Origin: Ascidiella aspersa
Taxonomy: Eukaryota
DNA length: 64,000 nucleotides
Direction of reading: 5' to 3'
NCBI GenBank assembly: GCA_963924565.1
Contig: OZ004609.1
Location: forward strand, 29,078,001 to 29,142,000
The stretch's first letter is position 1. Each line of letters opens with the position of its first letter. Under the pieces are notes generated by a model. It saw only the letters and a list, made by a program, of their open reading frames with translations, made no database searches and was not told the DNA's origin. This document shows, in pieces, positions 4,601-16,186 of this stretch. The translations under genes were made by a program, and so were the position numbers.

Positions 4601-7600
4601 TCAGGACTGTATCCCAAAACAGTTCAACTCGACTTTATCTCAATTAATAAAATATGCCGCGGGCCGGTAAAACTACCTCTTATGGCCGGATTTGGCCTGC
4701 GGGCCTTAGTATGGTGAACCCTGACTTAGGCCAACAAAATTAACCATATGTTACGCCAAATTTCAGGACTCTGTACTTCACGGCCTGTCGGATGCCTTAG
4801 TATACACGAGATGTATCAGTGTTGTAAATAATAAAGGGCGATACAGGCGAATTACATATAAACATAAGACAATAAAAGGCCGTGAAGTAGAGAGTCCTGA
4901 CACTTTGACGTAACACATATTCGGCAAATCTGTATCTGGAAAAAGACATAATCAAGCAGATCTCTCACCCTCGGCGTTCGAGCAATGCTGTGCAGAGAAA
5001 GGTGGAAGGAATCTCGATGAGTCCGGAAAGGCTGGTGCTGACGTAAGGGTTGGACCCGATGCTGCAGGCCGCCAGGGTCATCGCAAAGTACACGAAGCTG
5101 TTTACGCTCCTGCGGCAGAAGGACAACGGTTGGCGGTTCAATAACGATAAAACAAATCAGTATTTTTGGTGTATGTGCTGCATTTGATGCCTAACTGTGG
5201 TGCAGCTACCAGGTAACTGGATTATTAACTAGCCTTTCAAATAGTTTTTCAGTGCTTAAAGTTTAGGCTTTAGGCAGTGGTTCTCAACCGGGGTGCCGCG
5301 GCGCCCGTGTGTTAATTCTAAAGCTCAAGGGTGCCGATAGCTATTTGAGAATTTTAAGGATCAGATTTTTGCTCAATTGGTAAGCAGCTCGATACAACTG
5401 TTTGTCTACGATTAGAGTCCATTATACCAGATGACATTTTCCTATATGTTTTAAATTGATTCCCGTTCAATTTAGAGTGACATTTCGGTAAAATAGGCCT
5501 TCTCTGAAAAAAACGAAAATTCCAGTCGGCGTACCGAAAATGTATTTATTATTTTTGAAGGGTGCCGTAAGCCATAAAAGGTTGAGATTCACTGGTTAAG
5601 ACCCTTTGCCTAAACCAGGGGTCGGCCCTACCGGCCCGCGGGCCGGATCCGATGCAATTCATCCGGCCCGCCGCCTCTTTGACAAATTAGACACGAGTAT
5701 GTTTCACATACTTTTTGACCATTTAAACTACGTAATTGCAAACAATTTTCGCGCTTCGCGCGAATGTCCACTATATGTCCGGTTTGTTTACGTTTTGATG
5801 TTGCCTTTTTACCTAGATCAGCGATTCTTCACCCGTTGTGCGTATCGCAAAATGGGAAAAAGTATTAAAAAATATTGGATATATATTTTTTAACATTTTT
5901 TATTTTCAGCAATGTAAAAAAAACTTGCCAAAATTTAAAAGAAATACCGGTATACCAAAAAAATCACGCTCGCTTTGATCGCCAGGTGAGCCTCGACTTG
6001 AAACAGTTAACAAACACTGAGCTAGATTAACTTTAAATATTATCGCGTTTCCTCAAACTAGTTTTATTACACTTTTCATTCGCTTCGCGGCAACACTTTG
6101 CTGCCTCTGTAAATGTAATTAAACACGTTTTTAGGTGCAAAAATATCCAAGGCCTGCCTGATTCACAGAACTTGTTCTAACATTTTAATAACACAATTCT
6201 TAGTAATCATTTTGTGCGGCCCGCAGAGACCTTTTTAAGTTTGGTTTTGGCCCGCGACTAGAAAAAGGTTGCCGACCCCTGGCCTAAACCATAAATATGC
6301 TAGCAGAAAGCCAAAACAAATTCCCTCTTATTGATTTTAACATACTGTTAACAGTTGGCTTGTCTAAATCTGTTCTTCAAAGCGCGTGCCTTTATTAAAT
6401 TTCAGAGTAAAACGCCATGCTGGTTAAACACCGGGTGATTTTAACGCAGGACGTAACTATTTGAGAGTTTAACTTCAATCTTAAGTTGGGATTTCGTTTA
6501 GTCAAGTACCATTTGTGCAAAACGAACGAATACGACGTAACCGAGTGTTACGTATGCAACATGTGGTAATGCCGTATAAATACCCACCAAATGCAAAGCA
6601 TGACTAGCGTCCGGCTGGCGGTCACGTGGTGTCGGAGAAGGTCTAATACACTGTAGTTTCGAGTGGTCTGCTGAGTAGGAATGTTTGAACTTGCGGCCAG
6701 GCATATCTCTGCATAAAAAAACTCTCTGTATAGCTGCCTATGGCTGTTAAATAAAAATAAATGTTTTGTGAGTGTTAACCTTAGTGTTTTAGTTTATTTA
6801 AACACTGCTCCTAGTGGCGCGCTTTGCCTAGAGCATGTACGTGTCTTGTTTGTCCTTCATTTGAGACGCGCCTGTGTTAGTGGTAACATCTACTCTGTTG
6901 CGGTGTAAATTAAGTTTTATATTTATTCTGTGTTTATTGCTATTAGTGTTGATAACTTTGTGTGATTCTATTTGAATAAGGAACTAAGGTTTTGTAACCA
7001 TCGTCGTGTTTATTGTTTGTAAACTGATAAAGACTTCAGTGGACATTAACTTTCAATGGTAGCAGAGGATGGTTGTATCTTTTAAATGATGCAGCAAATC
7101 GTTCAATAAAGTCTCCCCCTAAGTTTAGGGAAGATACGCCATATTCATCTTGGAAAAACAAAGTTAAAATGTGGCAACTTGTAACGCCTGTTGTAAAAAA
7201 AGAACAGGCAATTGTTGTCCTTTTGGAAAGCCTAGAGGGCTATGTAAAGGCTGAAAAGGCCGTTGCACAACTTACGCATGGAGATCTGCACTCTGAAACC
7301 GGAATGGAACGACTAATACATTACCTTGACATCGCATTTCAAACGGAGACAGTTGACGAAGCCTACTCAACGTACGCAAATTTCACGAGGTTTGCTAAAA
7401 CTAAAGATATGAGTATGGCAGACTATATTATAGAATTTGAACATTTGTCGTACAAAATGTCCTTTCATAAGATGGAACTTCCGGACGCCATCTTAACCTT
7501 TAAAATATTAGATGGCGCAAATGTAAGCCCTAAAGAACGGCAATTAGCTTTAACTATGGCAAGTGACCTTAAGTTTAGCACAATGAAATCGGGTCTAAAA

Positions 7601-10600
7601 CGAATATTTACAAATCCGCTTAATGCTTGTACCTTGCAATCCCACGCAAAAGATATCAAAGAAGAATCCTATGTGACAAGTAATCAGCATAAATTTAACA
7701 AATCTACCAGTTTTACAAATAATAAAAAATTGAACCCCCAAGACAAATTTGGTAAAATATCCAGATGTGTTATATGTGACTCCAAGATGCATTGGGCAAA
7801 TCAATGTCCACATAAGAGTGGAAATGCTTCGGTAAATGTTACGGAATACACACAGGAAGTGCAAATTAATTTAGTGCTGTTTTCGAGTTATAAAGAAATT
7901 TTTTTAGCAGAAACATTTCAATCTGCAATTATTGACACAGCGTGCTCAAAAACAGTTTGTGGCCAACATTGGCTTCAAAATTATGTGGATAACTTAGATG
8001 TTGATTTTAAGAAAAAAGTAAAGTTTACCCCATCTCACACTGTTTTTCGTTTTGGTGATGGGAGAAAAGTAGTCTCTGAAAAGAAAGTATTAATTCCAGC
8101 ATTAATCGCAGGAAAATCTTGCCATATTGATGCTGCGGTTATAAAAGACGATTTACCTTTATTGTTGAGTAAATCCTCATTAAAACGGGCAAGCACTACG
8201 CTTGACCTTGCACATGATTGTGCAACAATGTTTAACAAAGATGTTGAACTATTTCTTTCAAGCAGTGGTCACTACTGTGTCAACATTTCACCTAGCAGAG
8301 AAGGGGAATCTTCTGAGAATGTTCTGCTTCTACAGAACATGACCGATGCAGATAAACGTAAGAGTATTGGTAAACTACATTTACAGTTTGGGCATGCTTC
8401 AATCGAAAATCTGCAGAGGCTGCTGAAAAATGCCAACTGTCAAAGTTCCAAACTTTCCTGTCTGATCAAGGAGGTTGTTCAATCGTGCGATATCTGCAGG
8501 CGATATAAGAAGCCTGCTGCGAGACCAATAGTCGGACTTTCGTGGGCTGAGGACGTCAATGATGTGGTAGCCATGGACCTTCACGAACTGCAACCTAATT
8601 TATGGTATTTTCATATGATAGATATGTTTTCGAGATTTAGCGTTGCAGTAATTATAAAATGTAAAACGTCGACTACTATAGTAAAACACTTTTAAGTATT
8701 GGATTAGTATCTTTGGTGCTCCTAAACGCGTTTTCAGTGACAATGGGCGCGAATTTAATACCAATAAGTTTCATGAGATGTGCAGTCGTTTTAATATTAA
8801 GATAACAACTACAGCCGCCTACTCACCTTGGAGCAATGGTCTATGTGAACGCCACAACCTAATTCTGACTGAAACCCTACACAAAGTAAGAGCAGAAGGT
8901 GCTTGTGATTGGGACACGGCCTTGGCTTGGGCGTTAAGTGCGAAGAACGCACTTATTAACCAAAATGGGTTTAGCCCGTCTCAAATTGTGTTTGGCCGTA
9001 ACGCAAATTTACCTTCTGTGTTTACAGATAATTTTCCAGCACTCAGTATGTCAGACCCACACAGTTCAACAGTGGGAGACCACATTTCAGCACTTCAAAC
9101 AGCTCGAAAGGCTTTGATTGCCGCGGAGTGCTCTGAAAAGATTCGCAGAGCTTTGAGAAAACAGACACGACAAACCCGTGACACGTATATTCAAGGTGAT
9201 CGTGTTTATTATAAACGTCAGGATCAAAGAGAATGGAAGGGGCCCGCAACAGTGCTCGGTCAAGATGGGCCTGTTGTTTTTATACGTCACGGTGGTCAGT
9301 TTATCAAAGCACATAATTGTAGAGTACAATTAGTTGAACCTGCGTCTGTCAATAGTCAACCGTTAACCAGTAATTCCGCAGATAGCATTCCTGCAAAGCA
9401 AACCTCACGTTTGTCGTCATCAGGGCAGGAAGATGATAGCATTTCTAATTCTGACGACTCTTCTATTGATCAATATGATACTGTTAATGATTTTACTGTA
9501 GGGAATAGAGCCTCTTTTTTAGATCGCGTTTCTGTTGACACTTCTGCTGATGCCGGCATCCCTGTTGCTTCGGGTGATACTTCGGTTGCACACGAAACGG
9601 GTCCTGTGGCTGAACCTCGTATGGCTATCCAGCCAGTTCTTGGTGGAAAGTCGCTTGTAAATAAGTGTGTAAAGTTTAATAACAGAGATGGCGTTTTATG
9701 TTCAGCTACAGTTCTAAGTCGAGCTGGAAAGGCAACCGGTAAGCACAGAAACGCCTACAATATCAAGTACAACCATCCAAAGGAGCTCGATGGCATTAAA
9801 GGTTGGATAAATTTTGACGACGTTTCAGATTTATCATACCTAACGCAACAGGAGAATGTGAGTACGGATGAGGTGTTTATTAACAGCCCGGTATGTTATG
9901 ATATTGCTAAGCTTGCGAAGTTGAAAAGCTGGAAAGATAATGCTGTGTATGAGGTTGTGCCTCAGCATAATCAGAAAGCCGTTTCGGTTCGCTGGGTTTG
10001 TTCCATGAAACAAACAGATAAGGGTTTGTTACCAAAGGCACGTTTGGTTGCTAGAGGTTTTGAAGAGCGCAACCTCACTAGTTTGGAAAAGGAATCCCCG
10101 ACGGGTTCTAAAGATTCTTTAAGAGTAATGTCTACTATTATACAATGTCAACACTGGGCATTAAATAGTATCGATATAAAGACAGCGTTTCTCCAGGGTA
10201 ACCTTGTTCAGCGGGATATTTTTCTTAAACCACCTTTAGAAGCTAAACAACCTCAGGTGTACTATGGAAGCTCAAGAAGTGCGTGTACGGCCTTGTTGAT
10301 GCATCCCGATTGTGGTATGAACGGGTTAAAGGTTTTATGTTATCAGTTGGGTGTAAATTATCTCGTCTTGATCATGCTTTATTTTACATGCACGATGGAA
10401 AAGAATTGCAGGGAATACTGTTGGTGTACGTTGATGACTTTTTATGGGCTGGATCACAATATTTTGAAGACAGCGTCATCCAACCACTTCGAAGTACCTT
10501 TCAAGTAGGAAAGGAAAGTTCAGAAAGTTTCCGCTATATCGGGTTGGATGTTATGCATGATCAAAAAGGTATTGCTTTTAATCAAGATAAGTACATTGAC

Positions 10601-13600
10601 AGCTTGCGGCCTCTAAATATCGATGCAAAGCAACGACAAAACCCAAATCAAAAACTAACTTGTGAGGAAGCCGAGGCTTTACGTTCAAAGATTGGTCAGC
10701 TCCTGTGGGTTAGTGGCCAGACAAGACCTGATGTTAGCTTTAATGTTTGTATTATTGCAACAAACTTCAAGAGGGCTACTGTGAGGGATTTATTGGACTG
10801 GAACAAAATTATTAGAAGACTGAAGACGGAAAAGGTAACACTGTCCTACCAATAGCAAATTGGTGGTGTACTCTGATGCAGCGTTTGGTAACCTTATGGA
10901 CGGAGGAAGCCAAGGTGCTTACTTAGTATTTTTGGTTGGGCCTAACAAGCAATGTAACTTGTTAAGTTGGCAATCAAAACGAATTAAGCGTGTTGTTCGC
11001 AGCACACTAGCTGCAGAAACTCTTGCCATGTCCGATCGGGTTGAAACGGCGGTATTTTTAAAATCGCTTTTAAATGAATTGTATTTCGATGATTTAAATT
11101 TAACAAATATTCCTATCGAAGTTATTACCGACAATCGCTCTTTATGTGATGCTATTTATTCTTCCAAATGTGTTACTGATAAACGATTACGTATCGACAT
11201 TGCCGTACTTCAAGAATTGGTTGACATTGGCCAAATATCTAATATTTCATGGTCACCTAAAGATAAGCAACTGGCCGATATCTTAACCAAAGATGGTGTT
11301 TCGCCTGTGTCCCTCTATTTGGTTTTAGCTAACGGGCATCTTTAAAAAAAAAAAAAAATTATAATGAGTTTGTTAACCTTAATGTTTTAGTTTATTTAAA
11401 CACTGCTCCTAGTGGCGCGCTTTGCCTAGAGCATGTACGTGTCTCGTTTGTCCTTCATTTGAGACGCGCCTGTGTTAGTGGTAACATCTACTCTGTTGCG
11501 GTGTAAATTAAGTTTTATATTTATTCTGTGTTTATTGCTATTAGTGTTGATAACTTTGTGTGATTCTATTTGAATAAGGAACTAAGGTTTTGTAACCATC
11601 GTCGTGTTTATTGTTTGTAAACTGATAAAGACTTCAGTGGACATTAACTTTCAGTGAGTACAGTAAAATGCTATAAAAATAGTTTTAGGGTTGTCCGATG
11701 CTTAACATTTTATTTCGATACTGACTCCCGAAATTTTGGAAAAAAACTATCGCAATCTAATCCGTTACAAAATTAAGTGATTAGTAAGTTTAAACAAGCA
11801 ACATGGATAACATTGAACGTTCAATAGTACGCTTTTTTAGGTTTTTAGGGCTTTAAGAATTAGTTACCTCTAGTTTTTTTTTTAATATTTCATCTTTCAA
11901 AGAATCGCCGCGTTGGAAAATCGTGACTAAAATTCTTATGTTAATTTGGTATCAGACCGGCACCTGTACGACACTAAGCAAAACTAGTCTCTGTCTGTAG
12001 AGGAAAAAGTCAAAAAAAATAAATCATTATTTCAAAACTGAACAAACGACAAGTGATGATCAGTTCATTTGTAATAATAACAAAGGTTTCGAATCAAGGC
12101 CTTCTTTTCTGCAACTTTTTATTTACTTATTTTATCTATAGTTAACAGGGAAAATGTGTTGCATTGTAACAAACATAACAATATACCTTGCGAAAAAAAA
12201 TCCTAGTACTAATTGGTGCTGCTAAAGAAAAATACAGATTTTCTTGCAAACAGGTCGAACCAGTTATAAACTCACTAGGATTGGCGACTCCATTTTTAAC
12301 GGCAATAAAGGCGAGGGTCTGTTCGGCTTCTTTGAGGCGTCCCTTCGAGTAAAGCCACCTCGGTGACTCAGGAATGGACCTAAATGTAAAAAAAGACCCC
12401 CCAAAAAACAATATTCCTGTAACAATAGCAACACTCAACTATACATTTGCTTAGAAAAAATACTAAAAAATGAAAAAAATTAAATTCGTGGTAAAACTTG
12501 GTTAGGCCAAAGAACACTAGAAGTTGCAAAATAACGTTTTTTTTTATCAATTTAAAATTTCGCGCATGGCAACCTATTTTTTCTCTTTTAATATTATTAA
12601 CAGATGTACCGATAAACGCAAACCGTACTTCTTCTAACGTTACTGTTTAAGTGGGTGTATATGATTAAACTACAGTACAGATTATTTGTGAAAGCGATAG
12701 CCTATGGTGCATTGATTCTGATTTCTGTTTCTGTATCGTTAGTAATATGGTCTTATTTGCGTTAGTCACACGCCGTTTCCTTTTCCGTTTAACCACGTAT
12801 GTAAATGAGATTACTAATGAATGGGAATTTCGAGTCATGGTGGACGTTGAATGCGAAAGGAAAAAGTTTATGGTCCTAAGAACGTTTTAACATAAACGGC
12901 CCAAATAATAATACTTGCATTTCGCAATGACGATGATGTTGAATTGCCCTAAGGCGGTATAAGTGCTGAGCCAACACATAAGATCACTCAAACCCAATAG
13001 GTTCAATCCTCTGTTGTGACAGACGGCAAAGAAATAAACTGTTTTGGTAAACTTTACCTTATGTTGTGGTTCCACAAAAACAATACAGTTATTTCCTTGT
13101 GATTGTTGCTTCACTATAGAGGGCTATATTTCGCAGTGAGATTGCTTTACAATCAAACGTCCTCAGATTTCAACAAATCAAGGCACGCATTCATTCTCAT
13201 ATATTTAACAGTTATAATATTATTTTGTTTTACTGAGATAATTTCCTTTGCAAAATAGTAGAATATTACCACAGGAAATAACAACGTGATGAATTGGCTT
13301 CGGTGGGTTTAAGTGAAACGTTTTTGAAATTATTTGTAATCTGTTAGTGACAGGTCAGTCATAACAACAACATTTCAATAGTGCATAGCTTAAAAAACCA
13401 ACGTCGCACTGAACTGCACTCACCACATATATATGAAAGGGATTGCTTGCGGCAAGGTAACAAATAACGTGAGGTCTCTCCAACCAGGTACGTAAAAAGC
13501 GCATATGGCAAGGATGCATATTCCAACGGCAAAAAGAATATTGCTGACCGCCCCTAGAAAAATATATGGTGATGGCTATTCAGAGTTGTTGCCACACAGT

Positions 13601-16186
13601 TTTATAAAACAAACTCAAAGACATTTCATAGAAAAAATTATTTTTAACGACCTATTTGATTGCCATGGTAAACAAAATTTGTTTTATTACAGCACTTTAT
13701 GAACACATAACTTAAGCTGGACATGAAATAACTACAAACACTATTTAAAGAAAAACAAAGGGTTTTTCAAAGACTTTTTAGCAACACTGGTAATTTTCGT
13801 ATTAATTCATTAACATTGGGAAAAAGACACCCGGCTAACCAGCTTCATAGAAACGCATATCGAAGGCAAAATTCATATCCCAGTGAAACTTGCAAAAAAT
13901 CGACTTAGGGCCACGTCTAAAATCAAAGAGCACACCTGTGACTGCCCACCAGGACCTTCCAACCATCTCTTGTAGGTAGACATAGAGCACCAGGGTCGCT
14001 CCTCCCTGTAGCGTACCGGTGAAGAAGCGGGCAGCGGCGAAGTGTTGCCAGGTCGGCGCCAGGGCAGTGCAGATAGACGATGGCAGTAGAAGGGTGAAAC
14101 CTGCGGCAAAACGACCACGGTTTTCCGACAGAAGACTAGTTTGGCGCTGATACTCGACCCGGCTGTTGAGTTACTCAACCTGTTGCGTTATATCTTCATA
14201 ACAAATGCTTTTTGTATAGTAAAAAATCAGAAGTAGGTATCGTTTGAACGTTTCGAATATCTCTTATTTTCAACATCATGTGGTTTGTAACTTAACCCAT
14301 AAAATTCTTGATTAAAAAAAAACACAGATTAATTTAAAAACGCGCGATCGGTCTCCTTTGAATTTGCCAGATTTTACCGTAGCAGGTAGTGGTGTATAAC
14401 TATAAGGGAAGGACCTTGCTCTATTGATGGATGGGGAACCAAATGTTGGGCAAACTTTCTCACTTACCGACAAGCATCAGGGGCCTTCGTCCGAATCGAT
14501 CGGAAAGCTGGCCGAACGCGACCACGCCGACCAAGTTGCCGAAAAAGTAAAAGGACTGAATACGATCGCTCACCCACTGGCGATCCATTAAGCCCCACTG
14601 TGAACAAGTATAGCTAGGTAAAGGTAAAAATATTTCAATTAGGGCAAAGGACGGTAGCAGGGCCACTGGCGGTCAATTAAGCCCCACTTGGAAAAAGTAT
14701 AGGTTATGGTTAGAAATAGAAATATTTTATCTAGGGCAAAGGACAGTATTAGAGGACGATGGAAGCCTAACACTTTCAAGGTGAATCTTAAACTGTTTAT
14801 AAAAACAGTTAAAACATAAAATAATTTCTTAAATTTTAACAGAAATATATATTTCGCCTATAAGACATCATCAGTTACTTAATTCCAATGAATCTTTTAA
14901 GGTGTGAATTAAAAACGCCGTCATGACATTGGGTCATTCCATGCCGTTGAAAGTAATACCTGGACCAAGAAGTGACTTCGTGGAGACTACATACTTGGAA
15001 AAATAAGTTGGAGCAATCGTCGCCTCACCCGTAGGTGCGTGGGGGGCGTAGATCTGCTACCGCCCGGCTCTAACGCAGGATGGAAGATATGGCGTTGTTT
15101 GAACCTACTGCGAACTGGAGTATAGCACGCACAAAATGGAGGCTGGAAAAGTGGGGTTTCAAGCACCTTGTGTGAATGCGGCACAGCAGAGGGCACAGTC
15201 GCTCACGGCTTAAAATGCCCTTTGATTGATGAGCCATGCTCCACCACTGATCTTGCCGAATTTAACGATCGGGCGAGACAGTGTGTCGAAAAATGGAAAC
15301 TCTCCGTTTAAAAATACCAACTTTAAAGACTCGAATATATATATATATATGTAAGCTAGTTTCCAGAACCACTGACATTCTGGGTATTTTTTTGTAGGTC
15401 AGATTACGGTGTGAATTTTTTTCTTTTTTAAACGTCAAAGCTTTGTCCAACCTTGAGCATGGCTAACTTTTTCGAACAGCAGTTTAACAAACACTCTTTC
15501 AGAGTAAAGATTTAACGAAAACAACGAGGTTGGCGTGAAATTTCACACTGAACTGCTTACCTCTTTTAAAATGGAGCTATCATCTGAAACTTGCGGGTTG
15601 ACCTTCTGCAGATCCGCCGGTTTGGCACCAACAAACACAACCAGCATTGTGTGGCATGTCAAGAAGAGCTGAAATATAAGGTCAACTCTAATTTACATAG
15701 AAGTAGTGATCTAGTTAGGTTGATCAAGCGTGAAGAATAAACGTTAAATATTTTGTAATACTTTACACGCGCCACAAATGTGCCGCACCTATCCATGGAA
15801 TGCTACAATACAGGTCGTGAGTTCGAACCTTACTGTAGGCTATAGTTGTTTTTCTAGCCTGCTTTGCTTGCAACATTTACCGACAGATTTGTTTAGTATG
15901 CGTTGGTGTACTATAATTTGTGTGCCGCTATCGTTGGTCATAACGCGACTTCAGTACGGCTAGATCACGGTTGTTGAACATTATGTGTGTGTACCTTTTA
16001 TGGAATGCCATACATATAAAATAAAAATTAGTTCTTTAGGGCACTTTTTTTATGTATTAAAGATAGGCAACATAGAAAAACCCTTATTACCTGGTAGATT
16101 GACATCACGCCGTAGGTAAGCTGCTGGTATCGGCCAAAAGTGCCGACCACTTTTGTGTAGCAATCGTCAACATCCAGCTTTTCCAT
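1652..16186 (-). CDS. SLC22A15: SLC22-family (SLC22A15-like) organic cation/solute transporter, 11 coding exons, ~478 aa
   Basis: GT-AG exons 16091-16186, 15561-15668, 14468-14597, 13936-14100, 13424-13553, 12276-12379, 6588-6708, 4969-5109, 4261-4337, 2293-2471, 1652-1837 join into one 1437-nt frame. Motifs: [40 protein letters not shown]. The short first extracellular loop resembles SLC22A15; exact orthology is not certain. Confidence 0.88.
3254..3810. repeat. Tandem array of ~2.7 copies of a ~203-bp unit
   Basis: Units begin AATGACTTTAC at ~3254, 3458 and 3660 and share GCAGAACAGTTTACTTGTTAT-like and TTCGCTAATAG blocks. Confidence 0.9.
4418..4723. mobile_element. hAT-type MITE, degenerate
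   Basis: CAGGCGTCACC...GGTGAACCCTG with GCGGGCCGG subterminal repeats. Another degenerate element lies at ~3916-4222. Confidence 0.6.
4747..4919. mobile_element. Short foldback MITE with ~40-bp imperfect TIRs
   Basis: TGTTACGCCAAATTTCAGGACTCTGTACTTCACGGCCT pairs with AGGCCGTGAAGTAGAGAGTCCTGACACTTTGACGTAACA; TA-rich flanks. Confidence 0.7.
5275..5594. mobile_element. hAT-type MITE, degenerate
   Basis: CAGTGGTTCTCAACC...GGTTGAGATTCACTG with internal GGGTGCCG repeats; no clean TSD. A similar remnant lies at ~60410-60708. Confidence 0.7.
5616..6281. mobile_element. hAT-type MITE
   Basis: TIRs CAGGGGTCGGC...GCCGACCCCTG, perfect 8-bp TSD GCCTAAAC, subterminal GGCCCGC repeats. Confidence 0.9.
6773..7055 (+). 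repeat. 5' LTR (283 bp)
   Basis: Direct repeat of 11371-11653 with two visible mismatches (6784 G / 11382 A; 6847 T / 11445 C). Confidence 0.97.
6965..6980 (+). other. Ascidian (Ciona-type) spliced-leader exon sequence in the 5' LTR
   Basis: ATTCTATTTGAATAAG matches the 16-nt Ciona SL exon. It is followed by GA rather than a GT donor, so it is not an intact SL RNA gene. Confidence 0.85.
7057..7074 (+). promoter_or_regulatory. Primer-binding site complementary to the 3' end of initiator tRNA-Met
   Basis: TGGTAGCAGAGGATGGTT, 1 nt after the 5' LTR; reverse complement of the animal tRNAiMet 3' end (AACCAUCCUCUGCUACCA). Confidence 0.93.
7073..11345 (+). pseudogene. Disrupted gag-pol polyprotein of the Copia element
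   Basis: Zinc knuckle [14 protein letters not shown], protease IIDTACS, integrase HLQFGH..CDIC with [31 protein letters not shown] and YVDD, RNase [21 protein letters not shown]. Frame breaks at ~8693, ~10257 and ~10855. Confidence 0.92.
11371..11653 (+). repeat. 3' LTR (283 bp)
   Basis: Direct repeat of 6773-7055, followed by TSD GTGAG. Confidence 0.97.
11563..11578 (+). other. Spliced-leader exon sequence in the 3' LTR
   Basis: Same ATTCTATTTGAATAAG at LTR positions 193-208. Confidence 0.85.

Follow-up and report, generated by a model that had tools for sequence, protein, structure and literature searches.

We analyzed a 64-kb stretch of the Ascidiella aspersa genome (contig OZ004609.1, positions 29,078,001 to 29,142,000 of the forward strand; hereafter the window) in which a Ty1/Copia retrotransposon carries a host spliced leader (SL) in both of its long terminal repeats (LTRs). 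Comparison with related elements across the genome leads us to propose that the RNA of these elements is very probably trans-spliced to a host leader and then serves as the template for new copies, with the leader as the 5′ end of the repeat (R) region. This view stems from the presence of either of two host leaders at one and the same LTR site in sister copies, so that the element RNA would have been trans-spliced before it was copied into DNA. We hold the detailed steps of the cycle, and any benefit to the element, with lower confidence than the trans-spliced template itself.

A spliced leader in both LTRs of the window element

The 16-mer ATTCTATTTGAATAAG, here termed SL-A, is present as two exact copies on the + strand of the window, at 6965-6980 and 11563-11578. 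No further match was found in the 64 kb even when two mismatches were allowed; in shuffled windows the mean number of matches at up to two mismatches, which is the chance expectation per window, was 0.17. Both copies occupy nucleotides 193-208 of a 283-bp LTR (6773-7055 and 11371-11653), leaving 75 nt to the LTR end, and both are followed by GA, not GT. These positions and flanks had been described in a first-pass annotation of the window, and we verified them. The same annotation had equated the 16-mer with the SL exon of Ciona, in agreement with the published Ciona leader (PMC1488885, Table 1).

Two families of spliced leader genes

The searches covered an assembly of 308.6 Mb that includes nine large scaffolds. 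In it, GT follows SL-A at 354 sites, most of them within 584-bp tandem repeats at 5.22-5.45 Mb of scaffold C3 (L035-L042). The repeat units have in common a conserved upstream region, and the exon leads into a GTAAG donor, beyond which lie a short hairpin and an Sm-like stretch rich in U. Because these copies have the anatomy of SL RNA genes, we conclude that the host uses SL-A. A host leader different from the 16-mer in the LTRs had been named at first pass as grounds for refuting the idea; the 354 SL-A genes show that the two are the same. Every few units, the SL-A arrays are broken by inserts of ≈7.8-8.4 kb.

A different 16-mer, ATTCATTCGAATTAAG (SL-B), is found in 2,688 copies genome-wide, 2,301 of which are followed by GT. 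SL-B genes lie mostly in 429-bp tandem arrays on scaffold C7 (from 14.76 Mb, L053), and in each unit a 16-nt exon with a GTAAGC donor is followed by a hairpin of six pairs and a U-rich stretch, in a layout like that of the SL-A genes. Judged by this anatomy, the host appears to carry a second SL gene family. We did not find ATTCATTCGAATTAAG in the literature searched, which consisted of open-access papers, and Rfam returned no match to the SL-A or the SL-B array, so the status of both as SL genes rests on their anatomy.

Outside the SL genes, dispersed copies number ≈270 for SL-A and ≈390 for SL-B. Reversed-pattern controls for these searches gave 0-1 matches. We considered a chance origin of the copies and rejected it, the counts being far above the expectation of <1 per genome.

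Leader exchange in family 1

The window LTR has at least 40 genomic relatives at 85-100% identity, which make up family 1. In many of these LTRs, ATTCATTCGAATTAAG takes the place of SL-A between the flanks ...ACTTTGTGTG and GAACTAAGG.... Restricting the census to the 36 LTRs with exact anchors on both sides, we found exact SL-A at the site in 15 and exact SL-B in 13. Another six have one of the two leaders with one substitution, and the remaining two have a 17-nt chimera, ATTCTATTCGAATTAAG, with SL-A at its 5′ side and SL-B at its 3′ side. A reading of the copies lacking SL-A as a 15-nt, two-edit mutant of that leader was rejected: it is an alignment artefact, the string is nearly absent genome-wide, and the sequences show a distinct 16-mer. 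The first-pass annotation had proposed that the motif should be conserved among relatives and should track the leader variants of the host. The outcome was positive and stronger than expected, with either host leader found at the identical position.

Leader type is unlinked to the phylogeny of the LTRs. We built a maximum likelihood tree of 32 family-1 LTRs with the leader and the three preceding bases masked and with an A or B label on 30 rows. The label changes eight times on this tree, compared with a mean of ≈9 for shuffled labels, and is thus as scattered as random labels would be. Eight LTRs show no difference in any of the 277 columns retained; three of them have SL-A and five have SL-B or an SL-B variant. 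Three full-length siblings from this identical set are 99.9% alike over the 1,400 nt beside the 5′ LTR, and their leaders are SL-A, SL-B, and an SL-B variant. Variability per column, expressed as the minor-state fraction, is 0.41-0.56 in the leader block and 0.22 at position -1, and does not exceed 0.09 in the rest of R (R′) and the unique 5′ region (U5).

Within single elements, the two LTRs agree. Both the leader type and the junction letters match in seven family-1 LTR pairs, and in one pair the variant TTTC... is common to both LTRs. Of six full-length elements, five have a perfect 5-bp target duplication. One LTR departs from the usual junction, its SL-B being joined straight to GTTTTG with GAACTAAG skipped.

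We also considered whether the LTRs at C5:967329 and C5:973031 belong to one discordant element and rejected this, as they represent a solo LTR and a 5′-truncated element. The region (C5:966000-974600, L068) contains a near-SL-B solo LTR and, 1 kb on, a 5′-truncated element ending in an SL-A LTR, with the flank CTAACCATTAATTT... repeated after both LTRs. Either the locus was duplicated locally or the assembly has joined two alleles here.

Leader exchange in the gag-only family 2

Many SL-A copies followed by GGA sit in pairs ≈2.2 kb apart and constitute family 2, a sister lineage. Its elements are 2.1-2.6 kb long, their LTRs measure ≈370 bp, their primer binding site (PBS) is of the family-1 type, and their interior contains gag-like sequence only. 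The two families are 66% identical from 2 nt before the leader through R, U5, the PBS, and gag, and their unique 3′ (U3) regions are not alignable to each other. Across 76 family-2 LTRs, exact SL-A is present in 39 and exact SL-B in 24, and the other 13 carry either a variant with a single substitution or a chimera; the SL-A to SL-B ratio in the LTRs of families 1 and 2 is thus roughly 1:1 to 1.6:1. Chimeras of both orientations occur, some joining a 5′ SL-A part to a 3′ SL-B part (including ATTCTATTCGAATTAAG) and others the reverse. The string ATTCTATTCGAATTAAG has three copies genome-wide, all in family-1 or family-2 LTRs. It is never next to GT and never arrayed; we therefore rejected it as a third SL gene.

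Leader type agrees between the LTRs of 15 of 17 family-2 pairs. Eight of the nine elements examined have a perfect 5-bp target duplication, and four elements have LTRs that are 100% identical. The 0-2 nt just 5′ of the first leader nucleotide vary between elements (none, G, A, GA, GG, C, or CG), and these letters are common to both LTRs of one element. In one family-2 element, both LTRs lack the 186 nt of U3 that would otherwise separate the leader from an upstream ATTCTAT.

Replacement of a native sequence by SL-A in family 3

Family 3 is unrelated to the other two and is BEL/Pao-like by its Pfam matches, DUF1759 and DUF5641. Four of its LTRs have SL-A between ...GTTTGTTGTT and ACGATTAAACC..., and in 17 LTRs with the same anchors, the exact place of SL-A is taken by a native 17-mer, ATTCTTTAAATGTTTAG, which ends in AG and has the same first five bases as SL-A. 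The two forms are 98% identical over the 300 nt downstream and identical over the 40 nt upstream. The genome contains 35 copies of ATTCTTTAAATGTTTAG, 0 of them followed by GT; never before GT and never arrayed, it was rejected as a third SL gene family. Such a before-and-after picture of leader capture is what would be expected had the RNA been trans-spliced at the native AG and reverse transcribed, with strong-stop DNA primed on the common ATTCT.

One SL-A-bearing BEL/Pao-like element, at C4:20845000-20856600 (L071), is arranged as a head-to-tail LTR-interior-LTR-interior-LTR array with a period of 4,894 bp and units that are 99.7% identical.

Structure of the window element

The LTRs, a GTGAG target duplication, a primer site, open reading frames (ORFs), and Pfam RVT_2 matches are all present on the + strand, and the window feature is therefore a 4,881-bp Ty1/Copia insertion, with GalEa-like traits. 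The 5-bp duplication, within the 4-6 bp of Ty1/Copia elements, lies at 6768-6772 on the 5′ side and at 11654-11658 on the 3′ side. The 5′ LTR (6773-7055, TGTTA...TTTCA) and the 3′ LTR (11371-11653) are direct repeats with TG..CA termini that differ by two mismatches, a divergence of 0.7%. The putative U3 of the 5′ LTR spans 6773-6964, which would include an outron if transcripts start within it; homology to the 66%-identical family 2 stops 2 nt before the leader. A TATA-like sequence, TATATTTAT, lies at 6918-6926. A candidate 3′ splice region at 6950-6980 comprises a branch-like TGATAAC motif together with a T-rich stretch and the terminal AG of the leader copy; the SL-A/SL-B swaps at this boundary point to use of that AG as an acceptor. 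The leader copy at 6965-6980, before which 0-2 nt vary between elements, would be the first 16 nt of R. The remainder of R together with U5 would occupy 6981-7055, the most conserved part of the LTR and the part alignable to family 2. In the 3′ LTR, the exact leader copy at 11563-11578 would offer landing homology for first-strand transfer.

The PBS, TGGTAGCAGAGGATGGTT (7057-7074), begins 1 nt past the 5′ LTR and is of the tRNA-iMet type, complementary to a tRNA 3′ end; this assignment was made against the published GalEa tRNA-Met PBS TGGTAGCAGAGC (as quoted in PMC3587641), which it matches at 11 of 12 nt. The gag-pol region (7073-11345) consists of ORF pieces at 7073-8695, 8778-10508, 10283-10855, and 10860-11345. 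Two Pfam matches to RVT_2, the Copia-type reverse transcriptase, have E-values of 2.8e-12 and 5.6e-09, and upstream of these are weak matches to Copia gag, a CCHC zinc knuckle, gag_pre-integrase/H2C2, and the rve_3 integrase core, which places a weakly detected integrase before the reverse transcriptase. Before the 3′ LTR, in the plus-strand primer region (11344-11370), an A15 run and TTATAATGAGTT are found and no classical purine tract; this arrangement is kept in seven elements, the window one and six others. The window copy is young but defective, because gag-pol is broken into four ORF pieces.

The first-pass annotation had labeled the element Copia/GalEa. The Copia part is borne out by the RVT_2 matches, and the GalEa part holds as a set of like traits, in that the size, the TGTTA terminus of the LTR, and the PBS would fit that clade. 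The leader copy in the LTR does not belong to an SL RNA gene, as the sequence after it is GAACTAAGG and a retrotransposon surrounds it. It has instead the properties of an SL-tagged retro-copy, an exact 16-nt unit at the U3/R junction that is interchangeable between the two host leaders.

A proposed replication cycle

In the cycle that we propose, the primary transcript would start upstream of the leader copy in the 5′ LTR. Host machinery would then trans-splice it at the AG closing that copy (...AATAAG/GAACTAAGG), a fresh SL-A or SL-B replacing the resident sequence; in family 3, the acceptor would be the native AG. Minus-strand strong-stop DNA, 92 nt beyond the primer, would be copied to the capped 5′ end and would therefore end in the complement of the fresh leader. 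This end would anneal to R′ and the resident leader of the 3′ LTR. SL-A and SL-B are both 16 nt long, start with ATTC, and end with AAG, so the 3′ end of the strong-stop DNA could pair even when the fresh and resident leaders differ. Extension would run on into U3, and plus-strand synthesis would put the fresh leader in both LTRs of the new insertion.

This cycle is the simplest account of both the leader swaps between siblings and the agreement between the LTRs within an element. Non-templated additions at the template 5′ end are known in retroviral and Ty1 reverse transcription, and such untidy additions explain the variable bases at -1 and -2. The chimeras are explained by early transfer, in which the new leader supplies the 3′ part and the resident leader the 5′ part. 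Had the following AG served as acceptor, the LTR in which SL-B meets GTTTTG without GAACTAAG would result, and mis-annealing of the strong-stop end would produce the 186-nt U3 loss in family 2; we give these two oddities little weight because slippage deletions could also explain both. Four parts of the scheme, namely the transcription start, the use of the AG as acceptor, the 3′ end of R, and the benefit to the element, are ones that we infer.

As to benefit, it is possible that an element built in this way can be trans-spliced with no loss of R homology, and it may be able to do without an exact promoter of its own. That the leader brings host-like translation, or lets the element escape silencing, is speculation. 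One extension of these ideas is that the element has handed the definition of its 5′ end to the host, any transcript that enters the 5′ LTR, including host read-through or intronic pre-mRNA, being trans-spliced and capped at the SL-AG. We put this forward tentatively, as a possibility that we regard as somewhat doubtful. If it is true, replication-competent RNA with a leader-first R would arise with no need for a precise promoter, and each retrotransposition would log the host leader used, amounting to a promoter-independent strategy and a natural barcode in a chordate.

Evidence against trans-splicing and alternative explanations

Several observations weigh against the proposal that these elements are copied from trans-spliced RNA. 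The use of SL-B by the host is deduced from gene anatomy and from the 5′ edges of unrelated retro-copies, not from mRNA 5′ ends. Discordant leaders are found in the LTRs of a rearranged family-1 structure (L066) and in two family-2 LTR pairs. The TATA-like box lies 47 nt upstream of the leader, which makes for a very short outron. Recombination between co-packaged RNAs could spread a few original swaps and so inflate the apparent number of events. The RNA data, one run under the same species label mapped on 6600-11370 at ≥90% likeness, yielded 203 reads, too few to show 5′ ends; the reads did not accumulate with their 5′ ends at 6965, and they revealed no polyadenylation site that would mark the end of R. 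In this run, sense coverage reaches ≈10x on the LTR, drops nearly to zero immediately past it, and does not extend into gag.

Many of the LTR reads run past the LTR ends into other flanks and sense coverage stops before gag, and we therefore take them to be mostly solo-LTR or read-through transcripts. Of 11 reads across the leader, 6-7 show SL-B, as expected from other copies. Reads spanning the SL site carry both leader versions but also contain U3, and the run neither supports nor refutes trans-splicing. Contigs from two runs under other organism codes also hold family 1, one of them with the SL-B form.

The first-pass annotation had set trans-splicing at the SL-ending AG beside a model in which transcription simply initiates at the first leader nucleotide, the RNA mimicking a trans-spliced mRNA and the SL being merely inherited. 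A variable junction 5′ of that nucleotide does accord with an RNA 5′ end there, however it is made, and an upstream TATA-like motif would fit native initiation. TATA boxes are usually 25-35 nt from the start, however, and this one is 47 nt away. Native initiation also leaves unexplained the repeated exchange of SL-A and SL-B on identical LTR and internal backgrounds, the A/B chimeras, and the replacement of the native 17-mer by SL-A in family 3. Given the swaps, the lack of linkage to the tree, and the restriction of the chimeras to LTRs, trans-splicing is favored, and we regard native initiation as quite improbable. Conversion at the DNA level from SL RNA genes, or chance, would make the 16-mer unrelated to RNA processing. 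We consider this extremely improbable: the limits of the swapped tract coincide precisely with those of the SL exon, the SL genes are without flanking homology to the LTR, the leader is found hundreds of times as an exact 16-nt unit amid unrelated flanks, and the chance expectation is far below one per genome.

LTR retroelements often recombine between co-packaged RNAs, and frequent recombination of this kind would spread captures once made. It could be argued that the leader was captured only once or twice in the distant past and has since moved by recombination or gene conversion alone, with trans-splicing rare and the SL block a passenger. Recombination between elements is indeed suggested by the two family-2 pairs whose leaders disagree and by one element that lacks a target duplication. 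Such a history would nevertheless require that families 1 and 2 each captured a leader at least twice at the same nucleotide, and family 3 once more. It sits poorly with a leader type that is as scattered on the tree as random labels, with junction nucleotides that vary together with each event, and with the retention of an exact SL across the 34% divergence between families 1 and 2 while the flanks changed. We judge it unlikely as a full explanation and regard recombination of a few captures as a possible contributor alongside recurrent trans-splicing of the template RNA.

Other leader-bearing sequences and the adjoining host gene

Several unrelated families of dispersed repeats (L043-L052) also start, at their 5′ edge, with an exactly bounded SL-B. 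One of these copies (L047, C2:7020819-7023836) has two leaders in tandem, a relic and a new one, like the relics of dinoflagellate retrogenes. The leader variant TTTCATTCGAATTAAG, with T for A at nucleotide 1, recurs in independent retro-copies including L047 and is present in both LTRs of one element at C8:19897857-19902797 (L012/L013); its source may be a variant SL gene or a reverse transcription error next to the cap. On the minus strand of the window, at 14878-14893, a one-mismatch SL-B is joined directly to a hammerhead-like core (CTGATGA...GAAA). This feature is a Penelope-type mini-retroelement copied from trans-spliced RNA, and examples of such mini-elements with a leader at the 5′ end were seen in the A. 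aspersa genome. At C1:3282284-3335616, six SL-A copies followed by A are spaced ≈10.7 kb apart. In the one copy of this set that was examined (L072), an A-rich tail precedes the leader, and the set may be a tandemly duplicated SL-tagged retrocopy.

The window element lies antisense in an intron of a host gene, 65 bp from the adjoining exon (6498-6708, minus strand). Thirteen RNA reads are spliced at 6708, next to an AG acceptor at 6709-6710. Pfam returned no match for the 68-aa ORF of this exon.

Implications

At least three LTR families in one chordate genome would tolerate or exploit trans-splicing, with the leader itself opening R. The two host leaders act as natural tags, and the swaps, chimeras, and untidy junctions log single events of trans-splicing and first-strand transfer; R boundaries and transfer fidelity should therefore be readable from genome sequence alone. 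SL-B would be a second SL gene family in an ascidian, one absent from the literature searched. Elements of this kind offer one route by which SL copies with a usable AG acceptor could spread through a genome, which bears on the origin of trans-spliced genes and outrons. In practical terms, annotation of retrocopies and transposable elements in animals that use SLs should check the U3/R boundary for a leader, and a copy of the SL encoded in the reference can hide or mimic trans-splicing in RNA-seq analyses.

Comparison with known systems

Among open-access papers, we found no account of an LTR whose R region incorporates a host leader; the first-pass annotation, made without searches, likewise knew of none in a chordate Copia/GalEa element. 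Mobile elements tied to the host SL system are known in the form of SLACS, CZAR, and CRE in trypanosomatids and NeSL-1 in nematodes, non-LTR elements that insert into SL RNA genes. For these elements, unlike those described here, the SL gene is an insertion site and is not carried as a replication signal.

A closer parallel for the DNA copy itself comes from the retrogenes, or "recycled" cDNAs, of dinoflagellates, which carry relic leaders (Slamovits and Keeling 2008; reviewed in PMC6050394). There, as here, a DNA-encoded SL at the 5′ edge of a retro-copy proves a trans-spliced template, and renewed trans-splicing of the retrogene leaves the relic leaders downstream of the new one. The dinoflagellate retrogenes, however, derive from host genes that were copied in trans, and the relic leaders decay, whereas in the ascidian case the SL would be a built-in part of the terminal repeat of an autonomous LTR element, continually renewed and placed in both LTRs as the element replicates itself.

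Cer1, a Ty3/Gypsy element of Caenorhabditis elegans, is likewise an LTR retrotransposon in a host with SL trans-splicing, and it has an SL1 acceptor in its 5′ region (PMC3315495). In contrast to the elements described here, SL1 is found only on its spliced 2.4-kb subgenomic mRNA, the 8-kb full-length RNA is not trans-spliced there, and the SL is not in the LTR (PMC3315495). The full-length RNA presumably avoids trans-splicing because part of R would be lost.

In its architecture, the window element resembles the GalEa clade of Ty1/Copia, represented by GalEa1, CoRex, Zeco1, and Cico1 of Ciona intestinalis (PMC3587641), with a length of ≈4.9 kb, short LTRs of the form TGTTA..CA, a tRNA-Met PBS (TGGTAGCAGAG..), integrase before reverse transcriptase, and RVT_2. 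The literature read on that clade (PMC3587641) describes no host SL in the LTR. In the window family, by contrast, a leader marks the U3/R boundary, and the two host versions replace each other there.

In retroviruses and Ty1, the first strand is transferred through R, and Ty1 is known for "untidy ends" at the template 5′ end. R there comes from the RNA 5′ end and is copied to both LTRs, and the U3/R junction is error-prone, as it is here; the agreement within LTR pairs and the variable junction of the ascidian elements match this mode of transfer. The difference lies in the origin of R, which in retroviruses and Ty1 is wholly encoded by the element, whereas in the cycle proposed here its first 16 nt would come from a host small RNA in each round. 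What would be new is the replication of an LTR retrotransposon with the first segment of R supplied by the host.

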